IMG/VR virus record: IMGVR_UViG_3300033146_002768
Location: 143,112 to 207,111 of that record
Strand: one strand, 5' to 3'
Length of the DNA: 64,000 nt
Below are positions 11,266-32,326 of the stretch, one piece after another. The position numbers were made by a program, and so were the translations under genes. The notes under the pieces are model-generated. The model ran no database searches. It saw only the letters and a list, made by a program, of their open reading frames with translations, and was not told where the DNA came from. Each line of letters starts with the position of its first letter. Positions within the stretch are counted from its first letter, which is position 1.

Positions 11266-12809
11266 TAGTCTTCCTTGTAGTAAGTATTTTTATTTATTAC
11301 TAATAAATCTATTTTATTATTATCTAACATTTCAAATGCATCTTCATACCAGTTAATAATTGTCTGTCCTTTTATATTAAAGCTTGTATTTAATAAACAA
11401 GGGATACCAGTTCTTTCTTTGAATTTTTTTAATAACTTATATATAAAAATATTATCTTTTGTAATTGTTTGGATTCGTGTTGTATTGTCTATATGTTTAA
11501 CTGCTTTAAAAAGATCAGTTTTATTATACCCCACAATATTCATATAAGGAAAATCTCCTTCTATATCAAAATATTTTGAAAGGTCATCTTTCAAAATCAT
11601 AATACCAAACGGTCTAAATTCTTCTCTATGTTTTACTCTTTTATTTAAAATATCTTTCATTTCTTTATTTCTTGGATCACATATTATAGATCTATTACCT
11701 AAAGATCTTGGTCCAATTTCTATTTCACCTTGAATTAAACCAACTATTTTTTTGTTAATTAATTCATCAATAAGTTTATCTAAGTTTAATGGTTCATTAG
11801 GTTTATTTGAATTTCCATTTAATTCTGGGCCAGTTATTGGAATAGAAATTTTATTCTTATAACAATTTAGTGCAGCACCTAAACATTGTCCAACATCACT
11901 TGGATAAGGAGTAAAATGATAATGTTCAAACATACCAGATTTTATTAATTTATAATTTAACATAACATTCAAAAAAGAACCTCCGGATAAACATATGTTA
12001 TTACTTAAGTATGAATATTTTTTAATTAAAAGAATAATCCTTTTAATCCATTCAACTTGAAATGTATAAGAAAAATCTTTTAAGTTTTTAACACGTTTAA
12101 CAATATAAGTATCAACTATATCGATTATTCTTTTATTTATTTTATCACCCATTATAAAAGGATTACTATTTAATATTAAATTAATTATATTTAAATATTT
12201 ATCATTATATTTTCCATAAGAACAATATGCCATAAATTTACCAGCTACATGTCCCTTATGATTAATCCCTTCAACATATTCTGGATTTATTTTTTCTAAA
12301 ACTTTAAATGATACTTTGGAAAAATGATTACCTAAAGGAAATTCAATTTTATCAATTTCTTTAATATTATTATCTTTACCATGAAAAATTCCACCATGAT
12401 TAAATTCTATTGAACCATCACTTCCTCCGTCTAAACTAATAATTAAAGAATCATTAAAATTGCTTGTATAGTATGAACTAGCTCCATGACATAAATGGTG
12501 AGAATAATATTTAACTTCTTTATATTTAATTTTTCCATTTAAAAAATATTTATCAAATAAATGTTTACTAAAAAATCTTTTTTCTTTTGCCATTAAATAA
12601 TTTGGAGAAACACAAATATAATCAAAATCATTTTCTACTTCTATTATTTTTTCAATGAATTTATTTATTATATCTTCTGTCCAATGTTTAACTTCAAAGT
12701 ATTTAATCTTAAAATATTTTTCTGCCTCAAAAAAATATTTGACTTTATTATCATTTATAATAACAAACCCACAATCATGAGGAACTAAATGTACGCCTAA
12801 TATTTTCAT
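11265..12809 (-). CDS. Carbamoyltransferase, CmcH/NodU/TobZ family (copy 1)
   Basis: HD, HHLCHGASSY, SLDGG, GKFMA, LSGGSFLNV, PYPSDVGQCLGA, EIGPRSLGNRSI, KHREEFRPF, NTSFN. Confidence 0.92.
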   Translation of the reverse strand: MKILGVHLVPHDCGFVIINDNKVKYFFEAEKYFKIKYFEVKHWTEDIINKFIEKIIEVENDFDYICVSPNYLMAKEKRFFSKHLFDKYFLNGKIKYKEVKYYSHHLCHGASSYYTSNFNDSLIISLDGGSDGSIEFNHGGIFHGKDNNIKEIDKIEFPLGNHFSKVSFKVLEKINPEYVEGINHKGHVAGKFMAYCSYGKYNDKYLNIINLILNSNPFIMGDKINKRIIDIVDTYIVKRVKNLKDFSYTFQVEWIKRIILLIKKYSYLSNNICLSGGSFLNVMLNYKLIKSGMFEHYHFTPYPSDVGQCLGAALNCYKNKISIPITGPELNGNSNKPNEPLNLDKLIDELINKKIVGLIQGEIEIGPRSLGNRSIICDPRNKEMKDILNKRVKHREEFRPFGIMILKDDLSKYFDIEGDFPYMNIVGYNKTDLFKAVKHIDNTTRIQTITKDNIFIYKLLKKFKERTGIPCLLNTSFNIKGQTIINWYEDAFEMLDNNKIDLLVINKNTYYKED

Positions 12810-13687
12810 ATATATCCTCGTTCTCTTATATTACACCAGTAACTATTAAAATATCTTAAACAATCATTACATCTTATACAACTCAAATCATTAGCCGCAG
12901 AAGGGAATAAAATAAAATTCATCATCTTTAGCATATTACTTTCATTCAATTTAGCTCTATCAGAATATGTCCAACTAATAGGACATCTTAATATCTCTTC
13001 ATTTACAAAATCAAGTGTGGGGTGTATTTGAGAATTACCACATGCTTGTCTATGTAATGATAATGTTTTTTCGCTTGAACTAAATGCTTTCTTTAACATA
13101 TCAAAGGTATCAGGTAATACATTATCTAACTTATAAACAGAATCATATAATTCTTTAAACTGAGATCTAGTTATTATATAATCTAAATCTCCATCAAACT
13201 CTCCCTTTTGTAAAAATGGAATTAAGTTAAATTTCATTAAAGGATATCTCTGACATTTATTTAAAACATCTTTATAATTCTTTGCATGAACTGGTTGAAA
13301 TATTTGTATTTTTTCATCGCAAATATCATGTGGTATATCTTCCTTAACTTCTATATTAGGATGATACCCAACCCAATCAATTTTATCATACCATCTATCA
13401 AAATAACCTTTATCAATAAATAGTCCATTAGTGTTAACTCTTATTTTATGACAATCACATACTTCTTCAAATATGTATTCAAGAATATCAATATCAACTA
13501 ATCCAGGTTCTCCGCCTGTTAATGTAAACACAGGAAATAGATCATCTCTACCATTAACCATTGGAAAATATTTTTCAATTAATGATTTATTAGCTTGTTT
13601 TGGATTTACTAATTGTCCTATATCACAATAGAAGCAATCCTTATCACATTCTTCAGTTAGAAATAAAACTAGTCTATGAGCTTTCAT
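12806..13687 (-). CDS. Radical SAM protein (family A-like)
   Basis: CDKDCFYCD, TGGEPGL, VNTNGLF. Confidence 0.88.
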   Translation of the reverse strand: MKAHRLVLFLTEECDKDCFYCDIGQLVNPKQANKSLIEKYFPMVNGRDDLFPVFTLTGGEPGLVDIDILEYIFEEVCDCHKIRVNTNGLFIDKGYFDRWYDKIDWVGYHPNIEVKEDIPHDICDEKIQIFQPVHAKNYKDVLNKCQRYPLMKFNLIPFLQKGEFDGDLDYIITRSQFKELYDSVYKLDNVLPDTFDMLKKAFSSSEKTLSLHRQACGNSQIHPTLDFVNEEILRCPISWTYSDRAKLNESNMLKMMNFILFPSAANDLSCIRCNDCLRYFNSYWCNIRERGYI

Positions 13688-14654
13688 TTATCCATCCTGG
13701 TATAAAATTAAATACTTTTATACACTTTTCTTTATTTGTTAATAAATCTAAATGACTCCAGAAAAATTTAGGTGTCGAATGTTCATATGCACAATGTTTT
13801 GAAGTGCATAAAATTTTATCTGTTTTATTTATTATATCTTTATATGAATAATCTAAATTATAATTTCTATTTCTTATACTAAAACAAGGATTTATAGAAC
13901 CATCAACTTCAATTAATAAACTTCTAGTATAGGCTAAACATATAAACCCTTTAAAATTTCTATTATAAATTCTTTTATGTTTTAAAATGTATTTATCATT
14001 TTTAAAATAAACACTCTTAATAAAATCAGTTCTTAATTCTACATCATCTTTTATATCAGGATCTATTTTAGTACTTTCATATAGATTATCTCTAACAGTT
14101 TTATATACTAATAAAAAATCTGAATCATCCTTAAAAATATCTTTCATTTTATTATACTCTGAAATACATTCTTTTGATTCAATCATAAATGCTAATTCTA
14201 TTGGGATATTTAAATCTCTTAATTGTTTACATTTATATATAAACTTATTAAAATTAATAAATTTTTTATGATAACTAACATACATATTAAAATCTATATC
14301 ATTCATTATATGAGCAAGTGTTTTATAAGTATGTAAATTAGCAGTAGCATTAGTTAGTAAACATAACGATGCTTTTTTAAATTTTAATACAGAGGATAAA
14401 TTTTTCATGAATGGTATAAAATAAGGATATATAGTAGGTTCACCACCTGTAATTAAAATATCTAATTCTATATTGTTATCAATATCTTCAATAAAATTTA
14501 AAAATTTATTAGTTATATCATAGTCGGTTTTAATTGAGTTATCTCTTATACCACAATAATCACATTTATAATTACAATTCAATGTAAGGTGATATGTTAT
14601 TCTTAACTTTTTAGATTCTGCATCACCATAGTATATTAAATTATCAGTTCTCAC
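13674..14654 (-). CDS. Radical SAM protein with Twitch-like C-terminus
   Basis: CNYKCDYC, TGGEPT, C.A....L.I..DG.I.PC, C....C. Confidence 0.88.
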   Translation of the reverse strand: MRTDNLIYYGDAESKKLRITYHLTLNCNYKCDYCGIRDNSIKTDYDITNKFLNFIEDIDNNIELDILITGGEPTIYPYFIPFMKNLSSVLKFKKASLCLLTNATANLHTYKTLAHIMNDIDFNMYVSYHKKFINFNKFIYKCKQLRDLNIPIELAFMIESKECISEYNKMKDIFKDDSDFLLVYKTVRDNLYESTKIDPDIKDDVELRTDFIKSVYFKNDKYILKHKRIYNRNFKGFICLAYTRSLLIEVDGSINPCFSIRNRNYNLDYSYKDIINKTDKILCTSKHCAYEHSTPKFFWSHLDLLTNKEKCIKVFNFIPGWINESS

Positions 14655-14664
14655 AATATCTTCC

Positions 14665-15384
14665 TTAATATAAATTTAGAATAGGTTTTTCTTTTTTATA
14701 ATTTCCAAGAGCTTCTTTCCAAGTTTTAGATATATGATGTTTTGTTGTTATTACTTTATTCTTTTTAGAGTTATCTAATATGCCACAAAATTTACATATC
14801 TTTTTTTTCTGTTGTAATATAGTTGATTGATTAATATCTTTCATTCTTTTAATTCCTATATCAAATCCAAATACTCTATCAATTGTTGCAGCAACTCCAC
14901 AAACATAAAATCCATATCTATTAAATCCTAGTCCACAATCAATTTCATTTATACATATTTCTTTATAATTATTTTTGATTTTAGAATATTCATCGTTATC
15001 AACAGGCGCTTCAAAGAAATTAAAAAAAGGATCGGGTCCTAATTTCTTATTAGTATTTTCTAAAATAATATTTTTAGAACGATGTAATATATTTAATCTA
15101 CTTGATTCTTTTACTCCATTTGTTATAACTGTAATATTTGAAGATGTATCGTTTAACATTGTTATGATATATATTAAATCATTTCTCAATGTAGGTTCGC
15201 CACCCAATAAATTTATATTAGTCCATTTAAAATTTAAATCATACGTTTCAATAACAAACTTCTCTAATTGTTTTATTGACATCTCTTCATCACTCGGAGC
15301 TAAATCTTTACTACATGCTCTATTACAATTAAAGCAAGATAAATTACATTTTATTAATAATTCTATTTCAATATTAGTTAACAT
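14665..15384 (-). CDS. Radical SAM protein
   Basis: CNLSCFNCNR, LGGEPTL, ITNG, CGLG....GFYVC, C..C. Confidence 0.88.
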   Translation of the reverse strand: MLTNIEIELLIKCNLSCFNCNRACSKDLAPSDEEMSIKQLEKFVIETYDLNFKWTNINLLGGEPTLRNDLIYIITMLNDTSSNITVITNGVKESSRLNILHRSKNIILENTNKKLGPDPFFNFFEAPVDNDEYSKIKNNYKEICINEIDCGLGFNRYGFYVCGVAATIDRVFGFDIGIKRMKDINQSTILQQKKKICKFCGILDNSKKNKVITTKHHISKTWKEALGNYKKEKPILNLY

Positions 15385-15387
15385 TAT

Positions 15388-16188
15388 TTATACCTTTATA
15401 TTATTAATAAAATGAAAGCAGGTGTTACATACATCACTATTATCAAATTTTATTTTTAACATGTCATTTAAATTATTGATTGTTAAATCTATACTTGCTG
15501 AATTTGTATGACTACAAACACATTTTTTAATTTTACCATAAACTAAATCTATAGAAAAATCATTACTTTTCTCTCGACAAATTTTTCGATATTTTTCTTG
15601 TTTATTCCATATCATTAAAATTTTAAAAAATAAGTTTTTAGAATAAATAGTCGCATTTTTATTTTTTATAATTTTATAAATAGTTTGATAATCATCATGA
15701 TTCAATTCAAATTTAGATTGTTTTAATTTAGAATCATATGGAGATATTTCAAAAGTTATATCTTTATATCTATTTAAAAAATCATCTAACAAATAAATAT
15801 TTTGTTTATGAACTGGAAAATGATAATTTATATTTTTAATATCATATGGATTAAATTCTTCATTTATTTCAGATACTGGATGACACATTATAGTGTTGAT
15901 GTATTCTTTATATTTCTTATAATATCTTTGAATAAATAATCCATTTGTATTAACATGTATATTTTTAGTTTGTAATATTTCAAATATATAATCTAAAATA
16001 GTTTCACTTAATAATCCTATTTCTCCACCAGTTAAAACAACTTTATCTATACTAGATTTATCTCTAATAATTGGTAGGTATTTTTTTAAATATATTAACG
16101 GAGGTTTATTGCGTTTCTTTAAATTTCCTATATCACAATATTTACATTTTCTATTACATTGTTCAGTTAAGAAAAGTGTTAGTTTCAT
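15388..16188 (-). CDS. Radical SAM protein (family A-like)
   Basis: CNRKCKYCD, TGGEIGLL, VNTNGLF. Confidence 0.88.
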   Translation of the reverse strand: MKLTLFLTEQCNRKCKYCDIGNLKKRNKPPLIYLKKYLPIIRDKSSIDKVVLTGGEIGLLSETILDYIFEILQTKNIHVNTNGLFIQRYYKKYKEYINTIMCHPVSEINEEFNPYDIKNINYHFPVHKQNIYLLDDFLNRYKDITFEISPYDSKLKQSKFELNHDDYQTIYKIIKNKNATIYSKNLFFKILMIWNKQEKYRKICREKSNDFSIDLVYGKIKKCVCSHTNSASIDLTINNLNDMLKIKFDNSDVCNTCFHFINNIKV

Positions 16189-16835
16189 AATAAATTTACC
16201 TTTTTCATTTCATCATATATTACATTTGCCCAATAATAATGACCTTCTTCAAGAGGATGATCCCACGGTGCCTTTGGAAATTTTCTTAATCTATAAAACA
16301 TATCACAATTTTTTTTATTAAAATCTAAGTAAAATTTTAAATTAATATTCTTCATAAAAATATTATCATCTTCTATATTATTAGATAAAGCATTAAAGAA
16401 AAAATATTTTATATTTCTAGACTTTAAAAATTCTTGAAATAAAAATAATTTATAACTAAATTCAATATCGGTAGTTTTTTTATCATATATATATTTATAA
16501 AATGATTTAGCTTTTAATTTAATTATTGAATCATTGGTACTTGTTTCATGAGAGTTATGAAGTATTTGTTTAAATTTACCTTTATACATTATTTCAAATC
16601 TATCTGGGTTTGACCAACCAATTATAATAATTAATTTTTTAGGATTATTATTTAAAATCCATTCAGTTGTTGTTCTTATTATTCTATTATTACTACTCCC
16701 AGATTTAGCATCATTCAATATTATTGTATTTATTTTTTTTGATAAAATACCTGGCCAGCAAAATTTTTCTCTATGAAGATTTTCTTCTTTTAATTCTTCA
16801 CCATAAGTAAAACTACAACCATTAACATATATCAT
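16185..16835 (-). CDS. SGNH/GDSL-like esterase or acyltransferase
   Basis: NGCSFTYG block I, SGSSN..I, C-terminal DHP...GH. Confidence 0.7.
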   Translation of the reverse strand: MIYVNGCSFTYGEELKEENLHREKFCWPGILSKKINTIILNDAKSGSSNNRIIRTTTEWILNNNPKKLIIIIGWSNPDRFEIMYKGKFKQILHNSHETSTNDSIIKLKAKSFYKYIYDKKTTDIEFSYKLFLFQEFLKSRNIKYFFFNALSNNIEDDNIFMKNINLKFYLDFNKKNCDMFYRLRKFPKAPWDHPLEEGHYYWANVIYDEMKKVNLL

Positions 16836-16943
16836 TATTAAATTCCTTATTTATAAATAAATGGATCTTTTTTTTTAGATTTTCTTTTTTTAATTATATA
16901 TTTAATTTCTAAAATAAAGTCTATCCATAATTCTATTATTTTT

Positions 16944-18401
16944 TTAATCATGATTAAATACCTTTATATTGTGGTCTATTCCAAATTGGATTGCATCCGA
17001 TGAATTATTTACTAATGGTTGTCCTTTAACATTTAAACTAGTATTTAATAACATTGGGCATCCAGTCTTTTTATAAAATTCATTTATTAAATTCCAATAA
17101 CCAGGACTTTCTTTTTTATTAACTGTATGAACTCTTGATGTATTATCAACATGAACTATAGCAGGAAATTTATCAGGATACTTACATGTCATTACATATT
17201 GCATGTAAGGACTTTTAGAAATAATCATATTAAAATATTCAGCGGCATATTCCTCTAATATAGATGGTGAAAAAGGTCGAAACTTTTGACGATGTTTAAT
17301 GTCGTTAATTTTATCTTTTATATTATTCCCACGAGGATCAGCTAATAAAGATCTATTACCAAATGCTCTTGGTCCAAATTCTGCTCGACCATTTGCAACT
17401 CCAACAATATTACCTTTTAACAATTCTTCTAATAAAGATTTAACTGGATAATCACCTTTAATATTATGACCAAGATAAGGTCCTTTCCAATTTAATCTTC
17501 CATTAATTAATGAAGCGGCTCCTATAGAAGACCCCGAATCACCTGGATTAGGCATTATCCAAATGTCATTAAAATATTTAGGTATTAATCTATTAGCTAA
17601 ACAATTTAAAGCAACTCCGCCACAATAAACTAAATTTTTTGAATTAGATATATGTTTAGATTGTTTAATAATATTTTCAATTACTTCTTCTGTAACTTGT
17701 TGAATTGAAGCTGCTATATCTTTTAGATAAGCTCCTTGTAGATAATCATTTGGAATTCCTTTATGACAATTTATTTTAAGTTTAAAAAATTTATCTTTAA
17801 TAAAATCCTTTTTAATTTTATCAGCATAAGATGGATACCCCCAACCAGCCATTCCCATTAAAATATATTCATCTTCATTTGGTTTTAAACCACATCGTTG
17901 AGAAAATGCTGAATATAATATTCCTAATGAATGAGGATAATTAACTTTTTTCAATAATTTTAAATCATCTTTATTTCCTTCCCATATACTTAAAGTAGAC
18001 CATTCACCAATAGAATCTATACAAACAATAACAGCATTATCAAATGGAGAAGTAAAATAACTTGCAGCAGCATGACATTTATGATGATCCAAATATTTAA
18101 TTGGAGTTTTAGGAAAATCAAATTGTTTAAAATAATTATGAAATATATTTTTAGTTTGAAATACTTCATTATATTGACCAGCAAATAACTGTCTTGTTTT
18201 CTTTAAATATGGTTTTTCATAAAAAGCTATAACATCAGGAGTACCAAATCTTAAAGATTCATTTAATATTTCTTGGTTTAAATATAGATCATTTTTTATA
18301 CCAGAATATCGTTCTGAATGAGCAGCAAATAATATTTCATTGTCGTCTATTAATGCAATTGATGCATCATGACTTAGTGCATTTATTCCTAATACTTTCA
18401 T
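16944..18401 (-). CDS. Carbamoyltransferase, CmcH/NodU/TobZ family (copy 2)
   Basis: HDASIA, HHKCHAA, DSIGE, EYILMGMA, YCGGVALNC, PGDSGSSIGA, EFGPRAFGNRS, RQKFRPF, NTSLN. Confidence 0.93.
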   Translation of the reverse strand: MKVLGINALSHDASIALIDDNEILFAAHSERYSGIKNDLYLNQEILNESLRFGTPDVIAFYEKPYLKKTRQLFAGQYNEVFQTKNIFHNYFKQFDFPKTPIKYLDHHKCHAAASYFTSPFDNAVIVCIDSIGEWSTLSIWEGNKDDLKLLKKVNYPHSLGILYSAFSQRCGLKPNEDEYILMGMAGWGYPSYADKIKKDFIKDKFFKLKINCHKGIPNDYLQGAYLKDIAASIQQVTEEVIENIIKQSKHISNSKNLVYCGGVALNCLANRLIPKYFNDIWIMPNPGDSGSSIGAASLINGRLNWKGPYLGHNIKGDYPVKSLLEELLKGNIVGVANGRAEFGPRAFGNRSLLADPRGNNIKDKINDIKHRQKFRPFSPSILEEYAAEYFNMIISKSPYMQYVMTCKYPDKFPAIVHVDNTSRVHTVNKKESPGYWNLINEFYKKTGCPMLLNTSLNVKGQPLVNNSSDAIQFGIDHNIKVFNHD

Positions 18402-19321
18402 AATATATCCATTATTAATTCATGTTCATTATAAACTAATTTATCGAGTATATCTTCTTGAGATAAATTTATGATTTGTTCTTTGTTATCATCAATGTTA
18501 AACAGTTTTAAATAGTAATGGAGTCCATCATTAAACGTTTTATTTTTTGGAGAGTAATATACAGGTTTATTTAAATAACAAAACTCAAATATTAACTTAC
18601 CTATATTCTCCACAAAAATTCCTGTACATACTTCGATCCATCTTTGATATATGTATGAATTACAACCATGAGGTAATAACTTATCATTACTAATATTTAA
18701 ATGAGTTAAGTCACACCAGCTTATAATTTTTTGTTCATTAAAATAACTTTTGAATGTCCCCATATGTGCTTGTTTATTTTCATTTATATCTCTACTAGTA
18801 ACTAAATCTTTATCAATACTAGTTAATGACTTTTCAATATGATTTAATCTATTAATACTAAATTTATGATAATGAATAATAAACTTATCTACATATTGTT
18901 CGAATCGTTTATTGCTTGGGTTACCTAGAAGTGTTATTTGATCACAAAATATATGATTCTTAATATCAAACATATCATCAATATAATTATTATGATATGA
19001 AATATATAATTGAGAAGTATCTAATAATATTAAGTGGTTACAATATATTTTAAAATTTGTCTTCTTTAAAAATCTTAATGTATTTGTTGTTGTGATAATA
19101 GTATCCGATCTCACTTCATCAGTTACTAATCTATCAACAAATTTTTGTGGAGAATCTTGAAGATTCTTTTTAATTTGATTCATCAATGATTTAAAATCTG
19201 TGTTATATAATTTTAATACAAATTCTACATTAATCTGTTTTCTTAAACATAAATATAAATCTATAATTGTAGTATCAGATCCAGATATAGATCCTTTAAA
19301 AAATTCAAATATAGTTATCAT
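18398..19321 (-). CDS. Hypothetical protein, possibly degenerate GT-B glycosyltransferase-like
   Basis: Paralog of 19318..20208 (HGC.S..YQRW....N.F(V/I)ENIGKLIFEF.Y...VYY); fold is inferred only. Confidence 0.4.
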   Translation of the reverse strand: MITIFEFFKGSISGSDTTIIDLYLCLRKQINVEFVLKLYNTDFKSLMNQIKKNLQDSPQKFVDRLVTDEVRSDTIITTTNTLRFLKKTNFKIYCNHLILLDTSQLYISYHNNYIDDMFDIKNHIFCDQITLLGNPSNKRFEQYVDKFIIHYHKFSINRLNHIEKSLTSIDKDLVTSRDINENKQAHMGTFKSYFNEQKIISWCDLTHLNISNDKLLPHGCNSYIYQRWIEVCTGIFVENIGKLIFEFCYLNKPVYYSPKNKTFNDGLHYYLKLFNIDDNKEQIINLSQEDILDKLVYNEHELIMDIL

Positions 19322-20208
19322 AATAACTCCAATATAAAATCATCATTATTATATACCAGTTTTTGTTCTATATCATATGGAGATATATTTAAAGATTGAT
19401 CTATTGAGTCATCAATATTAAATAAACTTAAGTAATGATGAAGTCCGTCATCAATGGATTTATTCTTACATGAATAATAAACAAATTTATTAAAATATAG
19501 AAATTCAAAAATTAACTTCCCAATATTTTCTATAAAAACATTTGGTTGTATTTCATACCATCGTTGATATAAGAATGATGAACACCCGTGAGGATATGTA
19601 GTATAACTATTTTTTAAATGACTAAAATCATAATTATTTATACTCTTATTATATTTATTAAAATATTTTTTAAATTGAACAACATGACAATAATCTTCTT
19701 CATCAAAATTTAATTTAGTTGTTAATGATTTACTAATAGGAGTAAACTTATCCATTATATATTCTAATCGGTCACTGCTAAATTTATGATAATATTCAAC
19801 AAAATCAATATCTTCAAATAAATCATTACTAGGATTTCCAAAGAAAATTATTTTGTTAGCATAAATATTCTCCATAGGAAATTCTTTATAATTCATAACA
19901 CCTGCTGAATCTAGAATGATTAATTTATCGCAATATAATTTAATATCAGTTTGAGTTAATGTATAGAAATTAGTTATAATAGTATTTGTATTATCAATTC
20001 TACTTTTTACAAATTCATTTATTATTCCTAAATGAGATTCACAAAAATTTTTATGAAAGTCATCTAATAAATTTCTAAAGTCATTTGGTGTTGATAGTTT
20101 ATATGCCAACTTCACATCAAACTTATCTCTAAGAAAGAAGTATAAATCTATCATAGAAGTATTAGTTCCATTAATACCTCCAGAGTATAAATCAAATATT
20201 GTAATCAT
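19318..20208 (-). CDS. Hypothetical protein, tandem paralog of 18398..19321
   Basis: Near-identical start MITIF and C-terminal block ENIGKLIFEF...DGLH.YL.LFNIDD. Confidence 0.4.
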   Translation of the reverse strand: MITIFDLYSGGINGTNTSMIDLYFFLRDKFDVKLAYKLSTPNDFRNLLDDFHKNFCESHLGIINEFVKSRIDNTNTIITNFYTLTQTDIKLYCDKLIILDSAGVMNYKEFPMENIYANKIIFFGNPSNDLFEDIDFVEYYHKFSSDRLEYIMDKFTPISKSLTTKLNFDEEDYCHVVQFKKYFNKYNKSINNYDFSHLKNSYTTYPHGCSSFLYQRWYEIQPNVFIENIGKLIFEFLYFNKFVYYSCKNKSIDDGLHHYLSLFNIDDSIDQSLNISPYDIEQKLVYNNDDFILELL

Positions 20209-20777
20209 AATAACACCTCAATATCTATTCTTTCTCCACCTTGAAATTCAGTAATTCCAAAATTAGTTTCTAATATACCTTTATAAAATCTATCAGAAAC
20301 ATTATATGGAAAAGTAAATATACTTGGAGATATTTGTAAATGTTTTTCAAATTCTTTAAACATTTTCTCTGAATCATTATTTATATATTCGCATTTGTAT
20401 CTTAAATTATTTATTAATCTAAGGTCTGTATGACTGTGACTATGTCCACTTATAATAGTATTGTCTAAAGAATTAATAAATTTTATCTGACTCCAATTCA
20501 TATAATTTTCATAGTTTCCTGATTTAGCTTTTAACATAGCATCTTGACAAGTTATAAAGTCCCAACTTTGTGGTTCGCCTGTTGAGTTAACTACCCCTGT
20601 AGGTATATTAAAAATAAGTGTAGTATCTAAATCATATAAATCAGGAAGAAATAAATATTGAGTCATTAATGCATCATCAAAACTAAGAATATAATCCTCT
20701 AAAGACAAACATAAATATTCTTCTTTAAATTCATGTATCATTAATACTGGTTTATCTATATTCTTTTTTGTATACAT
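20205..20777 (-). CDS. Polysaccharide deacetylase (NodB/CE4-like)
   Basis: LSFDD, MNWSQI, GHSHSH, FTFPY motifs. Confidence 0.8.
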   Translation of the reverse strand: MYTKKNIDKPVLMIHEFKEEYLCLSLEDYILSFDDALMTQYLFLPDLYDLDTTLIFNIPTGVVNSTGEPQSWDFITCQDAMLKAKSGNYENYMNWSQIKFINSLDNTIISGHSHSHTDLRLINNLRYKCEYINNDSEKMFKEFEKHLQISPSIFTFPYNVSDRFYKGILETNFGITEFQGGERIDIEVLL

Positions 20778-21324
20778 ACCATAACCCCGATTTATTTCCT
20801 TGATCTAAAAAAATTTTATTATAATTAATAAATAAACTATTTAATGTTTTAATTATATCTTTTGGATTTTTTAATCCAATCGGTCCACATATTATAGACT
20901 CTTTAGATTTTAATTTTGGTTTACTTAATATCAATAATTTAGATAATCTTTTAAAATCATAAAATGAATCAACCATAATTAAATCTATACTCTTATCACT
21001 AAAATTATTTATTGAGTTTAATACATCATCTTTTATTGTTTTTACATATTTATTAATTTTATATTTTTTGATATTTTTTTTCAAAGTATTTTTCATATTA
21101 TATTCATCTATATCTATACAATAAACTTCTAATTTCTTATAAATAATATATGGAGATATACTACAAATTGATCTACCTTTATAATTGCCACATTCTACTA
21201 ATGTTGAATTATCTGGGATCAAATCTAATAGCGCCCAATATCCTAATACTGATGTATAATCAAACCACCCTTCTGGCAATCCTTCATATAATATTTTTGG
21301 ATATATATTGCGAGCTTGAATCAT
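20752..21324 (-). CDS. Class I SAM-dependent methyltransferase (Methyltransf_24-like)
   Basis: VECGNYKGRS motif I, YCID, DLIMVDS. Confidence 0.7.
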   Translation of the reverse strand: MIQARNIYPKILYEGLPEGWFDYTSVLGYWALLDLIPDNSTLVECGNYKGRSICSISPYIIYKKLEVYCIDIDEYNMKNTLKKNIKKYKINKYVKTIKDDVLNSINNFSDKSIDLIMVDSFYDFKRLSKLLILSKPKLKSKESIICGPIGLKNPKDIIKTLNSLFINYNKIFLDQGNKSGLWYVYKKEYR

Positions 21325-22145
21325 ATAAATTGCCTCACTATTTCATCGTCTTTATTTAAGTATCTATTTTTTAATCCGTTCATATTTAAATCAATATTTC
21401 TATAATAACTTCCATCCTTCCATATCGGTATATTATTATAGATTATATTTTTTTCATAAAAATAAGATTCATGCATTAATCTTGGTCTTGGATCCCACCA
21501 TTTAGCTGCATGGTAATACCAAAAAATATCAAACAATTCAAATAAATTATTTTTATGTTTATGAGTTTTAAATATACATTGTTTTTTAGAAATTCCCCAT
21601 TCTTTTAAAAAACTATAATCATCGCTTTCAGGAGAATGTATAAAAAATTTATCGTCAGATTTTCTTAATGGTTTATATCTATCAAATAAAAATTTCATAT
21701 TATATTGAAAATCTTTATAAACGAATGGCATTTCCCCATAATAATTTACACAACCTTCTGGATATAAATTTTTATTAATTAAATACTTTTTATCCTCAGT
21801 ATGTAAATCTGATAAAATAAAAATTTTTGATTTATTATCTTTGATATTAATAAGACCTTGAACTGCATTTATAGTTCCATAATCTAAAATTAACAATTTA
21901 TTGAATTTAAATTTTAATAGATCTTTTTTCTTTATAGAAATAATGTTAATCTCCCAATCTAAATCATCTAAGTAATATCTTTCTTTAATAATACTAATGA
22001 GTTCTTTTTGAAAAATTGAATTATAATTAATAATTAATAATTTAAAATCTTTATTAAATTCTAAAATACTTAAATAATATTCAACAAGATCTATTACGGC
22101 ACCATGTATATTATTTATATAATTATTAAATAAAATAGCATTCAT
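21321..22145 (-). CDS. Glycosyltransferase-like hypothetical protein
   Basis: N-terminal HGAVIDL, similar to the 18398/19318 pair; C-terminal DPRPRLMHE resembles a GT-B nucleotide-sugar motif. Confidence 0.4.
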   Translation of the reverse strand: MNAILFNNYINNIHGAVIDLVEYYLSILEFNKDFKLLIINYNSIFQKELISIIKERYYLDDLDWEINIISIKKKDLLKFKFNKLLILDYGTINAVQGLINIKDNKSKIFILSDLHTEDKKYLINKNLYPEGCVNYYGEMPFVYKDFQYNMKFLFDRYKPLRKSDDKFFIHSPESDDYSFLKEWGISKKQCIFKTHKHKNNLFELFDIFWYYHAAKWWDPRPRLMHESYFYEKNIIYNNIPIWKDGSYYRNIDLNMNGLKNRYLNKDDEIVRQFI

Positions 22146-22163
22146 TATAGTTCCTTATATTCT

Positions 22164-23063
22164 TCATAATACTTCTCCCTCAATCCAATCTGAGAAATAT
22201 TTATATTTAGTTCTATCTAAAATATGTTCAAAATTATTATCAAATACTTTTAAAAAGAATTTTTTAAAAACCTTACTACTAAAAATTGTATTTATATTAT
22301 CTAATTTATAATCTAATATTAATTTATTGTGATGTCTTGTAACTTCACATATATCATCAATACCATCTTTATGATTTCTGCCAAAAACTTCAGGACAAAT
22401 AATTTGACAATCGGACTGGATAGCTTCTATTAAAGTATGAGGAAATGGGTCTTGGAATTGTTTTGATTTAGGATAAATATAATGAGTTACTTTTTTAAAA
22501 AACTCAATATTATTAAAGGTATGAGTATATTGTTTAATATGCTTATTAGAAATGTTTAAAGAACCGATATTATTTCCCATAGTATAAATATTAACATCTT
22601 GTTTTATATCTTTTAAAATATCAGTTATACATTTAAAACTATCTGGCGTTAACCAGTTTCTTATATAGAATCCAACACAAGGAATGTTAGATGAATTTTT
22701 TTTATTTATTTTAAAATCTGTTATGAAAGGAATGTAATGTTTTATTTTTCTTGCTGACGTATAGTAAAAACCATTATTACATGTATCATATAAAATAGAA
22801 TGATCTCTAGAATACATTAAATAATTTAAGTTTCTTAAACTAATTATATTCAATGGAAATGAATAATTAGAAGCATCTTGTGTATTAAATATAATTCTTT
22901 GATATTGCTCATTCAATTCTCTTAAATGAGCAATATCTCGAATTTGTTTACAATGAATAGTATCTATATAATCACTATGTTCTTCAGCTAATCTTTGAGA
23001 TGCAGTAAATGCTCCTCTTTTTAAATTGTCGTACTTCACGGATATAACTAAATATTTTTTCAT
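22164..23063 (-). CDS. GT4-like glycosyltransferase
   Basis: HYIYPKS..FQDPFPHTLIEAIQSDC resembles the GT4 E/D-x7-E motif. Confidence 0.55.
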   Translation of the reverse strand: MKKYLVISVKYDNLKRGAFTASQRLAEEHSDYIDTIHCKQIRDIAHLRELNEQYQRIIFNTQDASNYSFPLNIISLRNLNYLMYSRDHSILYDTCNNGFYYTSARKIKHYIPFITDFKINKKNSSNIPCVGFYIRNWLTPDSFKCITDILKDIKQDVNIYTMGNNIGSLNISNKHIKQYTHTFNNIEFFKKVTHYIYPKSKQFQDPFPHTLIEAIQSDCQIICPEVFGRNHKDGIDDICEVTRHHNKLILDYKLDNINTIFSSKVFKKFFLKVFDNNFEHILDRTKYKYFSDWIEGEVL

Positions 23064-23087: not shown

Positions 23088-23681
23088 TTAATTAAATGCT
23101 GAATAGAATGTAGCTAACCTTGCTTCAATATCTTCAACAGTTGTTAGTAATATAACTTCATCTGAGAAAATTTTGTAAATATCATAAGTTGATTTTCTCT
23201 CATCTAATTTATCTCTAAGATCTAAATAAATATCTAAAGCATCAATTATTGCTTGATCCCCTGCATTTATTATTTCAAGATATTTAGCTTCTCTATTTTC
23301 ATCAGTAATTACATAACCAAGATCAATCAATCTATTATTTATAATAGTAAATCCATAAAAATCAAACATTGAAAGACTACCAACTCTGTTTGATGTAAAT
23401 TGTCTAGCTTGATTTCTTGCACCAAGAGCTGCTGCAACAATTGCATCTTCTGCTGCCTGAATTATTAGATCACCTTCGACTAATGGATTGATTAAATTTT
23501 TAGCAAAGAATACTGATTGATTAGCTTCTAAAGAAGTTTCAATTGCGTTATAGCATTCAATTGATGAAATTTCATATAGTCTAACTCCGCCAAATTCAAA
23601 GATAGTTTCTTCATCCCCTTGAAATACAGATACTATTTGGTAATTAACACCAACATCATTAATACCAGCTATAAGTTTCAT
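23088..23681 (-). CDS. Hypothetical protein heading the glycan-enzyme block
   Basis: 197 aa ORF with GGAGG RBS and late-promoter-like motif at 23778. Confidence 0.6.
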   Translation of the reverse strand: MKLIAGINDVGVNYQIVSVFQGDEETIFEFGGVRLYEISSIECYNAIETSLEANQSVFFAKNLINPLVEGDLIIQAAEDAIVAAALGARNQARQFTSNRVGSLSMFDFYGFTIINNRLIDLGYVITDENREAKYLEIINAGDQAIIDALDIYLDLRDKLDERKSTYDIYKIFSDEVILLTTVEDIEARLATFYSAFN

Positions 23682-23765: not shown

Positions 23766-23785
23766 TATTTATAAATATGTTCTAT
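23766..23785 (-). promoter_or_regulatory. Putative late promoter
   Basis: TAGAACATATTTATAAATA upstream of 23681. Confidence 0.6.
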
Positions 23786-23808: not shown

Positions 23809-24921
23809 TTATTTTCTATCAAAAACTCCATTTATTTTTCCCCAAATAGGAGACAAACCTTCATGATATGATTCTTTTGGATTTGACATTCTCCATTTAT
23901 AAAGAGGACCGCTTACACAATGAGTCTCTGTTGAATTATTTAAATATTTTGTATTAACAACCATACTTCCATATTTAATCGCTTCTTCAACAATTGTAGT
24001 TCTCCACATAGGTAATATGGCTGTTACTATATTACCTGTATCAGGATTATCTGTTTTATCAAATCTTAAAATTGATAAACACTGTTGATGAAATCTAGCA
24101 TTATCTAAATAATAACTTTTATCTAAATCTCTTGATTTACAAATAAATTTTATTAATTGAGATAACATTGGAAAATATGTTCCATGCAACTGATCTGAAA
24201 TTCCTCTATACCTAATTTCTTGAGGTTTATATTCTCTACATACTTTATCAAGTTTTAACATTGGCTCTGTAGTATCACAACTTAATAATACTCCATAAGA
24301 ATATTCTTGATTAGGTTTTAAAGTTATAATATTTTCAGTTATATCTCTAATGTATTTAGGATCAGTTTCACTATCTACACTTAACGCCCAATTAACTTGA
24401 TTACTATCTGGAAATTTATTTATATAAGTATGATCTAATAATTTAATACCATTAGTATAAATATGTATTTTATTATTTGTATTTTCACAAATCCAATGAA
24501 CTAATTTATCAAGATCTTTAAACATAGTTGGTTCTCCACCAACCATTCTAATCACTGGATGATATCCATCATAATGATATTCTTTATATGGTCTTGAACC
24601 ATAACCTCTTAGATCATTAGGAACAAATTCTTTTATATTACTTATAAAATCTTCAAGGGTATTGTTACCAGGATGTTTAACAATCAAATCTTTTTCATAA
24701 CAATATTTACAATTTTTATTACAATCATTTGTCATATGAAAAAATGATGTGAAGTAACCTCCTGCTGTTTCTTCGGGATGAAATTGTTTTTCCCAAATAC
24801 TAAAATCTTCTTCTAATAATACTTTATCATCTTCTGATACTAACCATACTCCATTCATATCATAAACAATTTTCTTTTCTATTATATCTCTAAATTTATT
24901 TAAACCATGTATATTAGTCAT
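23809..24921 (-). CDS. Radical SAM protein
   Basis: CNKNCKYC, VGGEPT, YTNG. Confidence 0.88.
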   Translation of the reverse strand: MTNIHGLNKFRDIIEKKIVYDMNGVWLVSEDDKVLLEEDFSIWEKQFHPEETAGGYFTSFFHMTNDCNKNCKYCYEKDLIVKHPGNNTLEDFISNIKEFVPNDLRGYGSRPYKEYHYDGYHPVIRMVGGEPTMFKDLDKLVHWICENTNNKIHIYTNGIKLLDHTYINKFPDSNQVNWALSVDSETDPKYIRDITENIITLKPNQEYSYGVLLSCDTTEPMLKLDKVCREYKPQEIRYRGISDQLHGTYFPMLSQLIKFICKSRDLDKSYYLDNARFHQQCLSILRFDKTDNPDTGNIVTAILPMWRTTIVEEAIKYGSMVVNTKYLNNSTETHCVSGPLYKWRMSNPKESYHEGLSPIWGKINGVFDRK

Positions 24922-25951
24922 TACTAATTTCTCCTGTATGAAAATTCTGATTATAATAATATGTTATTGGACATATATCATAAATACTATTTTTAATATT
25001 ATCTATTAAATATCGTTGAATTAAAAACAACTTAGACTGGTATATATCGTCTATGCTGGTGTATAATTCTGGATCTATATTAAGGTCATCATTAAATTTA
25101 TATGGCGCAAAAAACGGACATTGGACTATTGTATTGTTATAAGTATAGATAGCCTTTAATGGAAATCTATGACAACCATTAACATGATAAGATACATCAA
25201 CATTATCTAATTTTATAATATCTTGAAATTCAGAGTATGTTTTTTGTATTGTATTAAAATTATTACAAGGGTTTTCTAATTCTTCATAATCCTTTAATAA
25301 TTGCAAGACATAAGTTAAATTTAATGGTTTATACTTTTCCATTATATATAATAATTCATCTCTATTTTTTATTACAGTATTAGCTATAACTTTAATTCCT
25401 ATGTCTTGTAATCGTTTTATATTTTTATAATGCTCTTCAAAGAAACCTTTATCAAAATGATAGTAATCTATTGAAGTATAAAAAGTAAATTCCTTACCAA
25501 CAGCATCACATATATCTTTACATAAAATAAAAAACATTAAATTATTTCCAATGTTTTTTAAGTTAGAATTAATTCTAAAACTTAATTTCATTTTATGTCT
25601 TGTATAAATATTTAAACAACGATCTAAAAATTTTAATAAATCATTTGCTGGCAATAAGGTTAACTCACCACAATTGAAATGAAGTTTTAAAGAATCATGA
25701 CCGTCATTTTTAAATTCAATTAAATACTTTTCTAAAAAAATATAAAATTTTTCATAATCAAATTCTTCATCTTGATTTAAATATTCTTTGAAGCAACAAT
25801 GTTCGCAATTCATATTACATTTACTAGTTAAATTCACCCCAAGGTTAGGAGTGAATTTAACTATATTATTTTCTTGTAATATAATTTTATTACACCAACT
25901 TTGAAAATCATTGCTATTCTCTATATGTCTAAACAATTCTTTTATATGCAT
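24914..25951 (-). CDS. Radical SAM protein
   Basis: CNMNCEHCC, NCGELT, INSN, C-terminal CHRF...CPF. Confidence 0.85.
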   Translation of the reverse strand: MHIKELFRHIENSNDFQSWCNKIILQENNIVKFTPNLGVNLTSKCNMNCEHCCFKEYLNQDEEFDYEKFYIFLEKYLIEFKNDGHDSLKLHFNCGELTLLPANDLLKFLDRCLNIYTRHKMKLSFRINSNLKNIGNNLMFFILCKDICDAVGKEFTFYTSIDYYHFDKGFFEEHYKNIKRLQDIGIKVIANTVIKNRDELLYIMEKYKPLNLTYVLQLLKDYEELENPCNNFNTIQKTYSEFQDIIKLDNVDVSYHVNGCHRFPLKAIYTYNNTIVQCPFFAPYKFNDDLNIDPELYTSIDDIYQSKLFLIQRYLIDNIKNSIYDICPITYYYNQNFHTGEISND

Positions 25952-25958
25952 ATGTTTC

Positions 25959-26519
25959 CTATAGATATTCTATATCATATTTTAATCTAATATCACTTTT
26001 AGCTGAATAGTTACAGTTACATGTGCAAGCATAATTACAATTACATGTACAAGCATAATTACATTGACATGTACATGCATAATTACATTGACATGTACAT
26101 GCATAATTACAATTACATGTACAAGAATAATTACAATCACAAACACATATTGCTTCTATAACATTAACTCTATCTCTCATTGCATTATATTGTTGAGCTT
26201 CAATTTCATCATCTGTACCAGTATCAGTATCAGCTAAATATGACGGCCATGTCCATGCAGTAGCAGCATTGATGCCATCACGAAGTCTTCTAACATGTAA
26301 ACTACTAGCATTAGTTGCAGTAGTAACAGCACCTGGATCTGCTGGCCAGCTAGCACTTCTTCTTGTTAATTCTGCAGCAATAGCTGTTCTTAATTCATTA
26401 TGATAAATAGCTTTAATTGAGTTAGTTGTTAATGGATCGTCGCTCCAAGTAGTAGGAGTTATACCTGGTATATACCCTCCATGTGCTGGGCAACTATTTG
26501 TGTGTCCTCCGCAAGCCAT
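25959..26519 (-). CDS. Cys-rich repeat fibre-like protein A (candidate radical SAM substrate)
   Basis: Six C-x-C-x-C-N-Y units, three internal W..D...H/Y..(L/M)R..(I/V) repeats, and terminal SDIRLKYDI. Confidence 0.85.
   Translation of the reverse strand: MACGGHTNSCPAHGGYIPGITPTTWSDDPLTTNSIKAIYHNELRTAIAAELTRRSASWPADPGAVTTATNASSLHVRRLRDGINAATAWTWPSYLADTDTGTDDEIEAQQYNAMRDRVNVIEAICVCDCNYSCTCNCNYACTCQCNYACTCQCNYACTCNCNYACTCNCNYSAKSDIRLKYDIEYL
26007..26147 (-). repeat. 24-bp-period coding tandem repeat encoding (x)CTCxCNY
   Basis: Plus-strand units such as gcataattacaattacatgtacaa repeated without spacers. Confidence 0.95.
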
Positions 26520-26531
26520 AGTATTATCTCC

Positions 26532-27107
26532 TTATTTAGTGCCTGAATAGTTACAATCACATGTACATGAATAATTACAATTACATGTGCAATAGTTACA
26601 ATTACAAGTACAATAGTTACAATTACAAGTACAAGCATAATTACAATCACAAGTACAATTATAATTACATTGACATGTACAAGCATAATTACAATCACAA
26701 ACACATTCAGTTTCCATTGTATTGACTTGCGATCTAATAGCATTATATTGATCTACTTGAATTAGATCTCCAACTTCTGTATCTGGATCGTCTAAATAAG
26801 ATGGCCATGTCCATGCTTTAGCAGCATTTACTCCATTTCTTAATTGTCTTACATGATTACTTTCAATTATATTTGTAGTAGCTACTGTTCCTGGGTCAGT
26901 TGGCCAACTTTGACTACGTCTAATTAATTCATCATCAATAGCATTTCTAAGTTCGTTATGATGTGTTGTTATAAACTTAGTAGATGTGGTTAACGGTTGT
27001 GTAGTCCACACAGTAGGAGATTCTGGGTATATTCCCTGAACATTAGATAGACAAGTGTTACTATGGTCTTCGCATGAAGATGGTGTTGTATGTCCTGTAC
27101 ATGCCAT
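26532..27107 (-). CDS. Cys-rich repeat fibre-like protein B (paralog of A)
   Basis: Seven C-x-C-x-C-N-Y units; shares HNELR.AI..EL.RRS.SWP.DPG and AWTWPSYL.D with A. Confidence 0.85.
   Translation of the reverse strand: MACTGHTTPSSCEDHSNTCLSNVQGIYPESPTVWTTQPLTTSTKFITTHHNELRNAIDDELIRRSQSWPTDPGTVATTNIIESNHVRQLRNGVNAAKAWTWPSYLDDPDTEVGDLIQVDQYNAIRSQVNTMETECVCDCNYACTCQCNYNCTCDCNYACTCNCNYCTCNCNYCTCNCNYSCTCDCNYSGTK
26547..26705 (-). repeat. 21/24-bp-period coding tandem repeat encoding CTCxCNY
   Basis: Seven units, directly readable. Confidence 0.95.
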
Positions 27108-28259: not shown

Positions 28260-28269
28260 TATTCACCTT

Positions 28270-29693: not shown

Positions 29694-29708
29694 TTTCGTT
29701 TCTCCTTC

Positions 29709-32286: not shown

Positions 32287-32326
32287 TTCAATTTACATGC
32301 TAGATTTATATTTTAATAGTATGATT

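Follow-up and report, generated by a model that had tools for sequence, protein, structure and literature searches.

The window analysed here is a 64,000-nucleotide stretch (positions 143,112 to 207,111) of the uncultured virus record IMGVR_UViG_3300033146_002768, a 207 kb record that is only 66 % complete. Positions 16185-23063 of the window hold eight tightly packed, co-directional genes on the minus strand, and the observation of this gene run in the first-pass annotation was confirmed for all eight open reading frames. The genes lie in the middle of a roughly 24 kb island (7155-32195), which that annotation did not report, and which contains twelve radical-SAM (rSAM) genes, a second carbamoyltransferase, a papain-like peptidase and two Cys/Tyr-repeat proteins. 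In order of transcription, the eight genes encode a GT4-like glycosyltransferase (GT; 22164-23063), a compact 274-aa GT (21321-22145), a class-I SAM methyltransferase (20752-21324), a short CE4 (NodB-homology) de-N-acetylase (20205-20777), two paralogous GTs (19318-20208 and 18398-19321), an O-carbamoyltransferase of the NodU/CmcH/TobZ family (16944-18401) and an SGNH-like DUF6071 protein (16185-16835). A conserved 197-aa protein of unknown function (23088-23681, minus strand; phrog_25260) precedes them.

None of the four GT genes gave a Pfam hit, no PF00534 match was found anywhere in the genome at an E value of 0.1, and the GT family profile designated A1 found no PDB sequence, so that Glycos_transf_1/Glyco_trans_1_4 membership was not supported at the sequence level and the GT assignments rest on predicted structure, motifs and kinship. 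The AF2 model of 21321 (pLDDT 96, pTM 0.92) aligned over its full length (residues 1-274) to the GT4 enzymes PglH (Z 14.5) and PimA (Z 14.2) using VIA-align, whereas plain Foldseek matches to the same model were weak (E about 4e-3, TM 0.4-0.5), probably because the domain orientation differs. The model of 22164 was only moderately confident (pLDDT 74, pTM 0.79, from six sequences) and best matched PimA (Z 14.7) and BshA (Z 14.4). The GTs 19318 and 18398 are 44 % identical, 19318 matched Glycos_transf_1 clusters in the ESM Atlas with a TM of 0.6, and their family aligned with the 21321 family by hhalign at 94.6 % probability (E 7e-8), so the earlier description of 21321, 19318 and 18398 as three related GT-like genes is right. 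All four carry a (D/E)x7E motif, invariant as D205-x7-E213 in the 22164 family, D218-x7-E226 in the 21321 family and E227-x7-E235 in the 19318 family, two of the three families having D in place of the first E. The first-pass annotation had named non-GT folds as a result that would count against it, and the predicted GT-B/GT4 folds do not bear this out.

The de-N-acetylase 20205 matched the phrog family 'polysaccharide deacetylase' (E 4e-14), four homologs at 42-48 % identity carry PF01522, and the family profile hit the PgaB/IcaB CE4 de-N-acetylases (E 7.5e-7), which are PNAG deacetylases and its nearest solved relatives. Residues F33-D34 are invariant and D35, H112, H114 and H116 are conserved in at least 90 % of sequences, in agreement with the Asp-His-His metal triad. 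The carbamoyltransferase 16944 has the Carbam_trans_N plus Carbam_trans_C architecture (E 1e-46 and 1e-55 in one tabulation, 9e-46 and 8e-55 in another) and matches phrog_1601 (E 5e-110), its best solved relatives being NovN, GdmN and TobZ (E 1e-49 to 1e-38). The methyltransferase 20752 matched Methyltransf_24 (E 5e-9) with other weak generic methyltransferase hits, and lacks the DNA-methyltransferase (D/N/S)PP(Y/F) motif; PADLOC gave no defence-system hit apart from a weak methyltransferase match. The weakest assignment is that of 16185, which rests on a DUF6071 hit (E 2e-16) plus SGNH-like blocks read by eye (GCSFTYG, NDAKSGSSN, GWSNPD and DHPLEEGH), and which would be an esterase or acyltransferase; this gene also travels with the carbamoyltransferase in Ralstonia phage RsoM2USA. 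Searches of PDB with 20205, 16185 and 20752 using phmmer gave only noise.

The Cys/Tyr-repeat, rSAM, second carbamoyltransferase and peptidase genes of the island are also on the minus strand. Two paralogous Cys/Tyr-repeat proteins of 186 and 191 aa (25959-27107; genes 25959 and 26532) carry (A)CTC(N/Q)CNY repeats, and 25959 ends with an S74-type SDxRLK motif, the S74 intramolecular-chaperone cleavage motif at the end of the Cys-repeat proteins being typical of trimeric fibres. A search with the N-terminal part of 26532 gave only two relatives, and Pfam found nothing for the Cys-repeat proteins, 23088, 30835 or 31371. Three rSAM genes, with a 142-aa reading frame among them, occupy 27111-30824; 29709 has a Pfam SPASM hit, and 27111 and 29709 are nearest to PapB/SCIFF/CXXX-repeat thioether peptide maturases (PapB E 1e-40 and 7e-23) and not to sugar enzymes. 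Two further rSAM genes (23809-25951) lie between the Cys-repeat genes and the GT cassette, and a run of seven rSAM genes with the second carbamoyltransferase (11265-12809, 32 % identical to 16944) occupies 8583-16188. A papain-family (C1) cysteine peptidase (7155-8168) lies at the end of the island. A homolog of a fibre C-terminal domain (30835, phrog tail fiber) lies in the island, and tail-fibre-like and endolysin genes lie just downstream. No island protein has a transmembrane segment, which supports a cytoplasmic acceptor. Motifs resembling T4 late promoters (TATAAATA) occur on the coding strand in each main intergenic gap, including 23766-23773 in the 127-nt gap upstream of 23088-23681, which is the putative start of the transcription unit holding the GT cassette, 16848-16855 in the 108-nt gap upstream of 16185-16835, and 8193 ahead of the peptidase gene. 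Twelve of 44 such motifs fall in the 6 % of the window that is intergenic.

Megablast of the region and tblastn of 21321, 19318, 22164 and 26532 against 50,697 cultured-phage records gave no match, and a search for related loci with the single 21321 protein found nothing, but searches with family alignments recovered thirteen related loci (twelve distinct sequences, as L009 and L010 are copies), all but one of them partial. Each locus shows the part covered by its contig of one core order, namely rSAM 29709, 28270 and 27111, Cys-rich protein, 23088 family, GT 22164, GT 21321, CE4, GT 18398 and small rSAMs. The 23088 family sits directly upstream of the 22164-family GT in eleven of the thirteen loci, and is separated from it by one rSAM gene in the L009/L010 pair. 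A Cys-rich protein is seen in the eight loci L002, L004, L007, L009/L010, L012, L013 and L015 (seven distinct sequences), and in L004 the next reading frame hits Peptidase_S74. L006 begins inside a Cys-repeat reading frame. The remaining four loci do not reach far enough upstream to tell, L005 beginning at a stand-alone S74 chaperone reading frame and L011, L014 and L016 not reaching upstream. The methyltransferase, both carbamoyltransferases and the SGNH-like gene are accessories that are absent from the closest relative, and related islands carry sugar-nucleotide genes (KdsA-like, KdsB-like, DegT and an NAD epimerase/dehydratase) in the variable slots, which supports a glycan chemistry. The 21321 family has 401 representatives (about 400 at 50 % identity in metagenomes), among which almost no domain fusions that could point to the acceptor were found. 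A profile search of genome contigs gave only two contigs, binned as archaeal MAGs, which says nothing secure about the host.

The earlier interpretation, a Nod-factor-like module by which the phage builds a decorated glycan on its virion proteins, either a collagen-like fibre or the Cys/Tyr repeats, to shield them or alter receptor binding, was only partly supported. The predicted GT folds, the setting among fibre-like, endolysin and tail-fibre-like genes, and the synteny of the Cys/Tyr-repeat proteins with the GT genes agree with it, but the Nod-factor framing is an analogy and not membership. The chemical logic of Nod-factor tailoring (de-N-acetylation of a GlcNAc, methylation, O-carbamoylation and O-acylation) is matched, as are the enzyme superfamilies of NodB (CE4) and NodU (carbamoyltransferase). 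However, there is no NodC-type GT2 backbone synthase, the de-N-acetylase has no NCBIfam hit and is nearest to PgaB/IcaB, the methyltransferase is not NodS, and the carbamoyltransferase scores 144.7 bits against a cut-off of 1000 for the NodU equivalog NF041651. The SGNH-like protein is unrelated to the hexapeptide acetyltransferase NodL, no LbH protein was found in the module, and the acceptor is probably a protein and not a free chito-oligosaccharide. Orthology to NodS, NodL and NodU was therefore rejected.

The explanation we favour, which we hold to be about as likely as not, is that the region is the glycosylation part of a conserved, late-expressed, wholly cytoplasmic protein-modification island of a clade of large T4-like phages. 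In this view the four soluble GT-B enzymes would use host nucleotide sugars to build a short glycan containing at least one N-acetylhexosamine on a phage-encoded protein, most likely the Cys/Tyr-repeat fibre-like proteins 25959 and 26532, which are themselves probably cross-linked by the adjacent PapB-like rSAM maturases. The CE4 enzyme would then remove the N-acetyl group and expose an amine, and in this particular phage the accessory enzymes would decorate the glycan further with an N- or O-methyl group, a carbamoyl group, and the addition or removal of an O-acyl group. The analysis itself establishes the enzyme families and (predicted) folds, the conserved gene order, the absence of membrane segments and the division into core and accessory genes, whereas glycosyl transfer, the donor sugars, the order of the steps, the acceptor and the late timing are inferred, the acceptor from gene order only. 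Fold neighbours of 22164 include the cytoplasmic protein O-GlcNAc transferases SdgB (Z 13.6) and GtfA (Z 12.6), but the nearest solved folds also include the small-molecule GT4 enzymes BshA, MshA, AviGT4 and LmbT, and the nearest carbamoyltransferases act on natural products. In Campylobacter phage CP220, three distant members of the 21321 family sit beside rSAM runs with no Cys-repeat protein nearby, and one copy follows ribonucleotide reductase, so a unit of GT plus small rSAM may have a substrate of its own.

Neither DNA nor a small molecule is excluded as the acceptor, although both appear unlikely. Hypermodification of a hydroxylated DNA base to evade restriction, as in T4 glucosyl-hmC, arabinosyl-5hoC, TET-linked glycans or 5-carbamoyloxymethylcytosine, is suggested by the ability of phage NodU-family carbamoyltransferases to carbamoylate 5hmC in DNA (PMC8670742), by the glycosylation of DNA by phage GT-B enzymes, T4 AGT being a fold neighbour at Z 11.4-11.9, and by the CP220 homolog next to ribonucleotide reductase. 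Yet GT4 enzymes score higher than AGT, and no thymidylate-synthase homolog, ThyX, TET/JBP or TGT was found in the incomplete record (no hit to PF00303, PF02511 or PF12851, the TET search having no positive control) or in the Pfam tables of five related loci. The same study reports that carbamoyltransferases flanked by group-1 GT genes lay on contigs without modified cytosine (PMC8670742), the methyltransferase lacks the DNA amino-methyltransferase motif, a CE4 de-N-acetylase has no place in known DNA pathways, and the island sits among fibre and lysis genes. A small-molecule pathway making an aminoglycoside-, bacillithiol/mycothiol- or hopanoid-cyclitol-like glycoconjugate during infection is slightly less improbable, as GT4-then-deacetylase logic is found in BshA/BshB, MshA/MshB, BtrM/BtrD and HpnI/HpnK/HpnJ, and as the fold neighbours, the TobZ, NovN and GdmN hits and the CP220 gene pairs are compatible with it. 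Against this, no scaffold-forming enzyme, exporter or resistance gene was seen in the island or in related loci, synteny with the Cys-repeat proteins and peptide-maturase-type rSAMs is strict, and the position is late and structural. Remodelling of host LOS, capsule or peptidoglycan to block superinfection or help release was rejected as very unlikely, since, although CE4 and SGNH enzymes commonly act on cell-wall and exopolysaccharides (cf. the PgaB/IcaB hits) and phage GTs can change host serotype (PMC12619734), no island protein has a transmembrane segment, no flippase, polymerase, GtrA/B or lipid-carrier GT was found, and the cassette of this large lytic-type phage is linked to phage proteins and not to integration or lysogeny genes.

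Among described systems, mycobacteriophage virion glycosylation (Freeman et al. 2023, cited in PMC12619734) likewise uses phage-encoded soluble GTs, with methyltransferases in some phages, to decorate the phage's own virion proteins in the cytoplasm, but there recognisable GT families act on capsid and tail-tube C-termini, whereas here GT families without a Pfam model are linked to Cys/Tyr-repeat fibre-like proteins and twelve rSAM genes, with de-N-acetylation and carbamoylation added and the acceptor unproven. In cytoplasmic O-GlcNAc glycosylation of bacterial repeat adhesins (GtfA/GtfB with Gtf3; SdgA/SdgB), GT4 GT-B enzymes also act stepwise on short tandem repeats, but these are Ser-rich or Ser-Asp repeats of secreted adhesins, no deacetylase, carbamoyltransferase or rSAM partner is involved, and no sequence similarity was detectable. 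The glycosylation clusters of giant viruses (chlorovirus capsid glycans, Megavirinae fibril glycans) are similarly virus-encoded, host-independent and clade-variable sets of GTs and sugar-modifying genes that decorate capsid or fibril proteins, but belong to eukaryotic viruses with different enzyme families and no rSAM or Cys-repeat component. Ranthipeptide/SCIFF and glycocin RiPP pathways share a Cys-rich precursor next to PapB/SCIFF-like SPASM maturases and a cysteine peptidase in the cluster, and glycocins show that Cys, Ser or Thr of such peptides can be glycosylated, but the putative precursors here are proteins of 170-436 aa with fibre-type features and not short peptides, glycocin GTs are GT2 (GT-A) and not GT-B, and no exporter is present. 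The rSAM genes of Campylobacter group II phages (CP220, CPt10, IBB_35) include, in CP220, a 37 % identical homolog of rSAM 29709 besides the GT-like genes, features noted as unexplained (PMC2853527, PMC3322345), but the CP220 loci are scattered and those examined lack the Cys-repeat proteins, the CE4 enzyme, the carbamoyltransferases and the 22164 family.

A more far-reaching possibility, which remains tentative, is that a clade of large phages runs a RiPP-style assembly line on its own fibre-like proteins, in which PapB-like rSAM enzymes would cross-link (A)CTCNCNY repeats, previously unannotated compact GT-B enzymes would glycosylate them, and a swappable set of tailoring genes (CE4, methyl, carbamoyl, acyl, and Kdo-like or amino-sugar pathways in relatives) would diversify the glycan between strains, much as O-antigen loci do. 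This would be the first virion protein known to be both rSAM-matured and glyco-decorated, and would also explain the rSAM genes of Campylobacter group II phages, a puzzle noted since 2010 on which the distant homologs next to rSAM runs in the cultured phages CP220 and CP20 bear and which they bring within reach of the bench. Phage-encoded glycosylation of the phage's own virion proteins is known from only a few systems, chiefly some mycobacteriophages, and here it would be coupled to de-N-acetylation, carbamoylation and a dense set of rSAM maturases. The three GT families have no Pfam model, and with the 21321 family a sizeable enzyme family gains a predicted fold and a likely role. The core-plus-accessory layout points to strain-level diversification of a surface glycan, which bears on receptor binding, on escape from host or immune recognition, and on phage engineering.

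The island lies in the last 64 kb of a 207,111-base IMG/VR virus record which CheckV rates as 66 % complete, so that the phage genome is probably about 300 kb, with about 310 kb expected for the complete genome. The GC content is 21-25 % (0.21-0.25) across the island (compared over 8000-30000) and 28-33 % (0.28-0.33) in the adjacent plus-strand replication and metabolism region (32000-50000). Ordinary phage genes are carried in the window, including a tail-fibre-like protein, an endolysin, an NAD-dependent DNA ligase and a NAMPT-like gene. No cultured phage matched the window at the DNA level, and the nearest cultured kin for individual genes fall into two groups, the T4-like Campylobacter group II phages, for the radical-SAM gene at 29709 (37 % identity), and the Ralstonia jumbo phage RsoM2USA, for the carbamoyltransferase (47.5 % identity).

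Window 16185-23063 holds eight tightly packed minus-strand ORFs, and the gene run reported in the first-pass annotation is confirmed. The ORF at 16944-18401 is a NodU/CmcH-family O-carbamoyltransferase, with both Pfam halves matched at E 1e-46 and 1e-55 and phrog_1601 at 5e-110, and its best solved relatives are NovN, GdmN and TobZ. The ORF at 20752-21324 is a class-I SAM methyltransferase (Methyltransf_24) that lacks the (D/N/S)PP(Y/F) motif of DNA amino-methyltransferases. The ORF at 20205-20777 has no Pfam hit of its own but matches a PHROG ‘polysaccharide deacetylase’, its homologs at 42-48 % identity carry PF01522, and the family profile finds the CE4 PNAG de-N-acetylases PgaB and IcaB at E 7.5e-7. 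In this family F33-D34 is invariant, and D35, H112, H114 and H116 are conserved in at least 90 % of sequences. The ORF at 16185-16835 is DUF6071 (E 2e-16) and shows SGNH-like blocks, although this assignment rests on motifs read by eye and is the weakest of the eight.

The four remaining ORFs, referred to by their lower coordinates as 22164, 21321, 19318 and 18398, have no Pfam, NCBIfam or PHROG hit and had been described as glycosyltransferase (GT)-like. For 21321, 99 metagenomic homologs were found and used to build an AlphaFold model with pLDDT 96 and pTM 0.92. Plain Foldseek matched this model only weakly, but VIA-align matched it over its full length to the GT4 enzymes PglH (Z 14.5), PimA (14.2), HepE, AviGT4, WaaG and BshA, with T4 alpha-glucosyltransferase scoring lower, at 11.4. 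For 22164, a six-sequence alignment gave a model with pLDDT 74 and pTM 0.79, whose best matches were PimA (14.7), BshA (14.4), SenB, SdgB (13.6) and GtfA (12.6). ORFs 19318 and 18398 are 44 % identical, and their family aligns with the 21321 family over the full length by hhalign (94.6 % probability, E 7e-8), whereas 22164 shares only the motif region with them. Each family keeps an invariant (D/E)x7E motif where GT4 enzymes have EX7E. Non-GT folds had been named in advance as the result that would count against the GT reading, and the ORFs pass this test.

The first-pass annotation did not report that the module is the middle of an island running from about 7155 to 32195. The island contains twelve ORFs with a radical-SAM CxxxCxxC motif or a Pfam, PHROG or NCBIfam radical-SAM hit, a second carbamoyltransferase (11265-12809, 32 % identical to the first), a papain-family C1 peptidase (7155-8168) and two paralogous proteins (25959-26519 and 26532-27107, both on the minus strand). 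The peptidase gene lies directly upstream of an endolysin (6440-6934) and of a small holin-like protein with a strong transmembrane segment (6005-6427), all on the minus strand. The C-terminal halves of the two paralogs are tandem (A)CTC(N/Q)CNY repeats, five to seven in number with three Cys and one Tyr per unit, and one of the two ends in SDIRLKYDIEYL, the start of the S74 intramolecular-chaperone motif of trimeric fibres. Relatives in other phages have up to thirteen repeats plus N-terminal C-H-x-H-type repeats. A 94-aa minus-strand ORF (VIVIMLV...) at 26459-26743 is just another reading frame of the Cys-repeat DNA and is almost certainly spurious.

The radical-SAM enzymes next to the repeat proteins (27111 and 29709, within 27111-30824 on the minus strand) are nearest to thioether-forming peptide maturases, with matches to PapB at E 1e-40 and 7e-23 and to SCIFF and CXXX-repeat maturases, all below the equivalog cut-offs, and the repeat proteins may represent a radical-SAM cross-linked phage fibre protein. 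The small radical-SAM genes interleaved with the GT genes match only generic models, with HxsC, MoaA or STM4011-type models best at E about 1e-7 to 1e-15. At 8583-16188 (minus strand) seven radical-SAM ORFs lie in a row, interrupted by the second carbamoyltransferase, and the small paralogs of about 270 aa among them (8583, 9410, 12806 and 15388) match no specific family, HxsC being the best match at E about 1e-7 to 1e-9. The 174-aa ORF at 30835-31359 (minus strand) is a stand-alone copy of the C-terminal domain of a 490-aa protein encoded elsewhere in the genome (117212-118684, phrog tail fiber protein), and homologs of it lie inside the island in two of the related loci, L009 and L015.

Thirteen related loci (twelve distinct sequences, as L009 and L010 are copies) were retrieved from IMG/VR, JGI, ENA, Logan and two MAGs, and their ORFs were compared with this genome by BLAST. 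One order recurs, with each locus showing only the part that its contig covers: radical-SAM genes of the 29709, 28270 and 27111 families, then Cys-rich protein(s), the 23088 family, GT 22164, GT 21321, the CE4 enzyme, GT 18398/19318, and small radical-SAM genes. A Cys-rich protein is present in every locus that reaches upstream, being seen as a protein in L002, L004, L007, L009/L010, L012, L013 and L015. L006 begins inside a Cys-repeat reading frame, where the frame artefact seen at 26459-26743 also appears, L005 begins at a stand-alone S74 chaperone ORF, and L011, L014 and L016 do not reach upstream. In L015 the Cys-rich module is fused behind a 230-residue domain and a poly-Gly linker. In L004 (2515-3789) the S74 intramolecular-chaperone domain looks split by a stop codon, as the repeat protein ends in SDENLKLEVEYL followed by the stop, and the next ORF, which starts at the following base, hits Peptidase_S74 at positions 16-53 of 58 and then carries more Cys repeats, which could be read-through, a trans-acting chaperone, or decay. 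L015 (JAGXNV010000009.1) and L016 (CBFCXS010000055.1) are deposited inside MAGs labelled Heimdallarchaeota and Woesearchaeota, and are probably mis-binned phage contigs.

The closest relative, L009, is 60-80 % identical at the protein level but lacks the methyltransferase, the second GT paralog, both carbamoyltransferases and the SGNH gene, and those genes are therefore accessories in this phage. Other relatives fill the variable slots with sugar-nucleotide genes (KdsA-like, KdsB-like, transaldolase-like, DegT and an NAD epimerase/dehydratase) and also carry other methyltransferases and an acetyltransferase, which marks the island as glycan chemistry. None of these supply genes was found in the present genome, which would therefore use host nucleotide sugars and tailor the glycan after transfer. 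The pairing of carbamoyltransferase and DUF6071 also occurs in RsoM2USA (MG752970.1, 10996-16572), where the 48 %-identical carbamoyltransferase is preceded by three paralogs of the DUF6071/SGNH-like protein, all annotated as hypothetical. This suggests a mobile two-gene cassette, apparently shared between unrelated jumbo phages.

The acceptor of the predicted glycosyltransferases is inferred from gene order, as is the role of the cassette in protein modification, whereas the gene families, the modelled folds and the recurring gene order are results of the analysis. A protein acceptor fits the strict synteny with the Cys/Tyr-repeat fibre-like proteins, the presence of peptide-maturase-type radical-SAM enzymes and a peptidase, which is RiPP logic, the flanking fibre-domain, tail-fibre-like and lysis genes, and the T4-late-type TATAAATA motifs found in each main intergenic gap on the coding strand. 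This T4 late-promoter consensus is over-represented in the window, with 44 copies against 28 expected, and 12 of the 44 fall in the 6 % of the window that is intergenic. It is concentrated in the few intergenic gaps, in the orientation of the downstream gene (8193, 16848, 23766, 32268, 62011 and 63846 on the minus strand; 33980, 49839 and 49851 on the plus strand). At 16848/16852 and 23766/23770 it forms a palindrome, TATTTATAAATA. The protein-acceptor model is held with only moderate confidence, and its main caveat comes from Campylobacter phage CP220 (NC_027997.1), in which the 21321-family profile finds three distant family members (E 1e-19, 1e-11 and 2e-4), while BFVD has models from phage CP20 with TM 0.77 and 0.71 to the 21321 model. 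Two of the three CP220 members sit next to radical-SAM genes, and no Cys-repeat protein lies nearby. Among the loci examined (68914-75399 and 121565-123342), gp077 and gp184, both annotated as hypothetical, are distant members of the 21321 GT-B family, gp077 lying three short genes upstream of a run of four radical-SAM genes and gp184 directly preceding one, and gp015, next to the baseplate hub, is a weak homolog of the 23088 family. One of the three family members follows the gp5-like and PAAR spike genes, and another follows ribonucleotide reductase. The cultured phages CP220, CPt10 and CP20 carry gp077- and gp184-type homologs, and a 7-deazaguanine base is known from their DNA.

A GT-plus-small-radical-SAM unit may therefore work on something else, such as an amino sugar or a small molecule, although a small-molecule product is considered unlikely for the present island. 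DNA is regarded as a still less likely acceptor, because every known route needs a hydroxylated base and searches of the 207-kb record found no ThyA homolog, ThyX, TET/JBP or TGT, with the reservation that the TET search had no positive control and the record is incomplete. The MetaGPA study found that phage carbamoyltransferases next to ThyA homologs act on 5hmC, whereas those flanked by group-1 GT genes lay on unmodified contigs (PMC8670742). Remodelling of the host surface is very unlikely, as no island protein has a hydrophobic segment that could span a membrane and no flippase, polymerase or lipid-carrier GT is present, from which the acceptor is inferred to be cytoplasmic.

The nearest working analogues are mycobacteriophage virion glycosylation, the cytoplasmic O-GlcNAc glycosylation of bacterial repeat adhesins (GtfA, SdgB) and the clade-variable glycosylation clusters of giant viruses. 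The term ‘Nod-factor-like’, used in the first-pass annotation, describes the chemistry (de-N-acetylate, methylate, carbamoylate, acylate) but not the membership, since NodC, NodS and NodL have no counterpart here and the carbamoyltransferase is far below the NodU cut-off. The interpretation offered there is supported only in part. Literature searches found no paper describing this island, but the many radical-SAM genes of Campylobacter group II phages have been noted as unexplained since 2010 (PMC2853527 and PMC3322345). On the evidence of sequence families, predicted folds and gene order, and with its acceptor inferred, the module is a real glycosylation-and-tailoring cassette of previously unannotated GT-B families, and it forms one part of a larger conserved radical-SAM and Cys-repeat protein-modification island.
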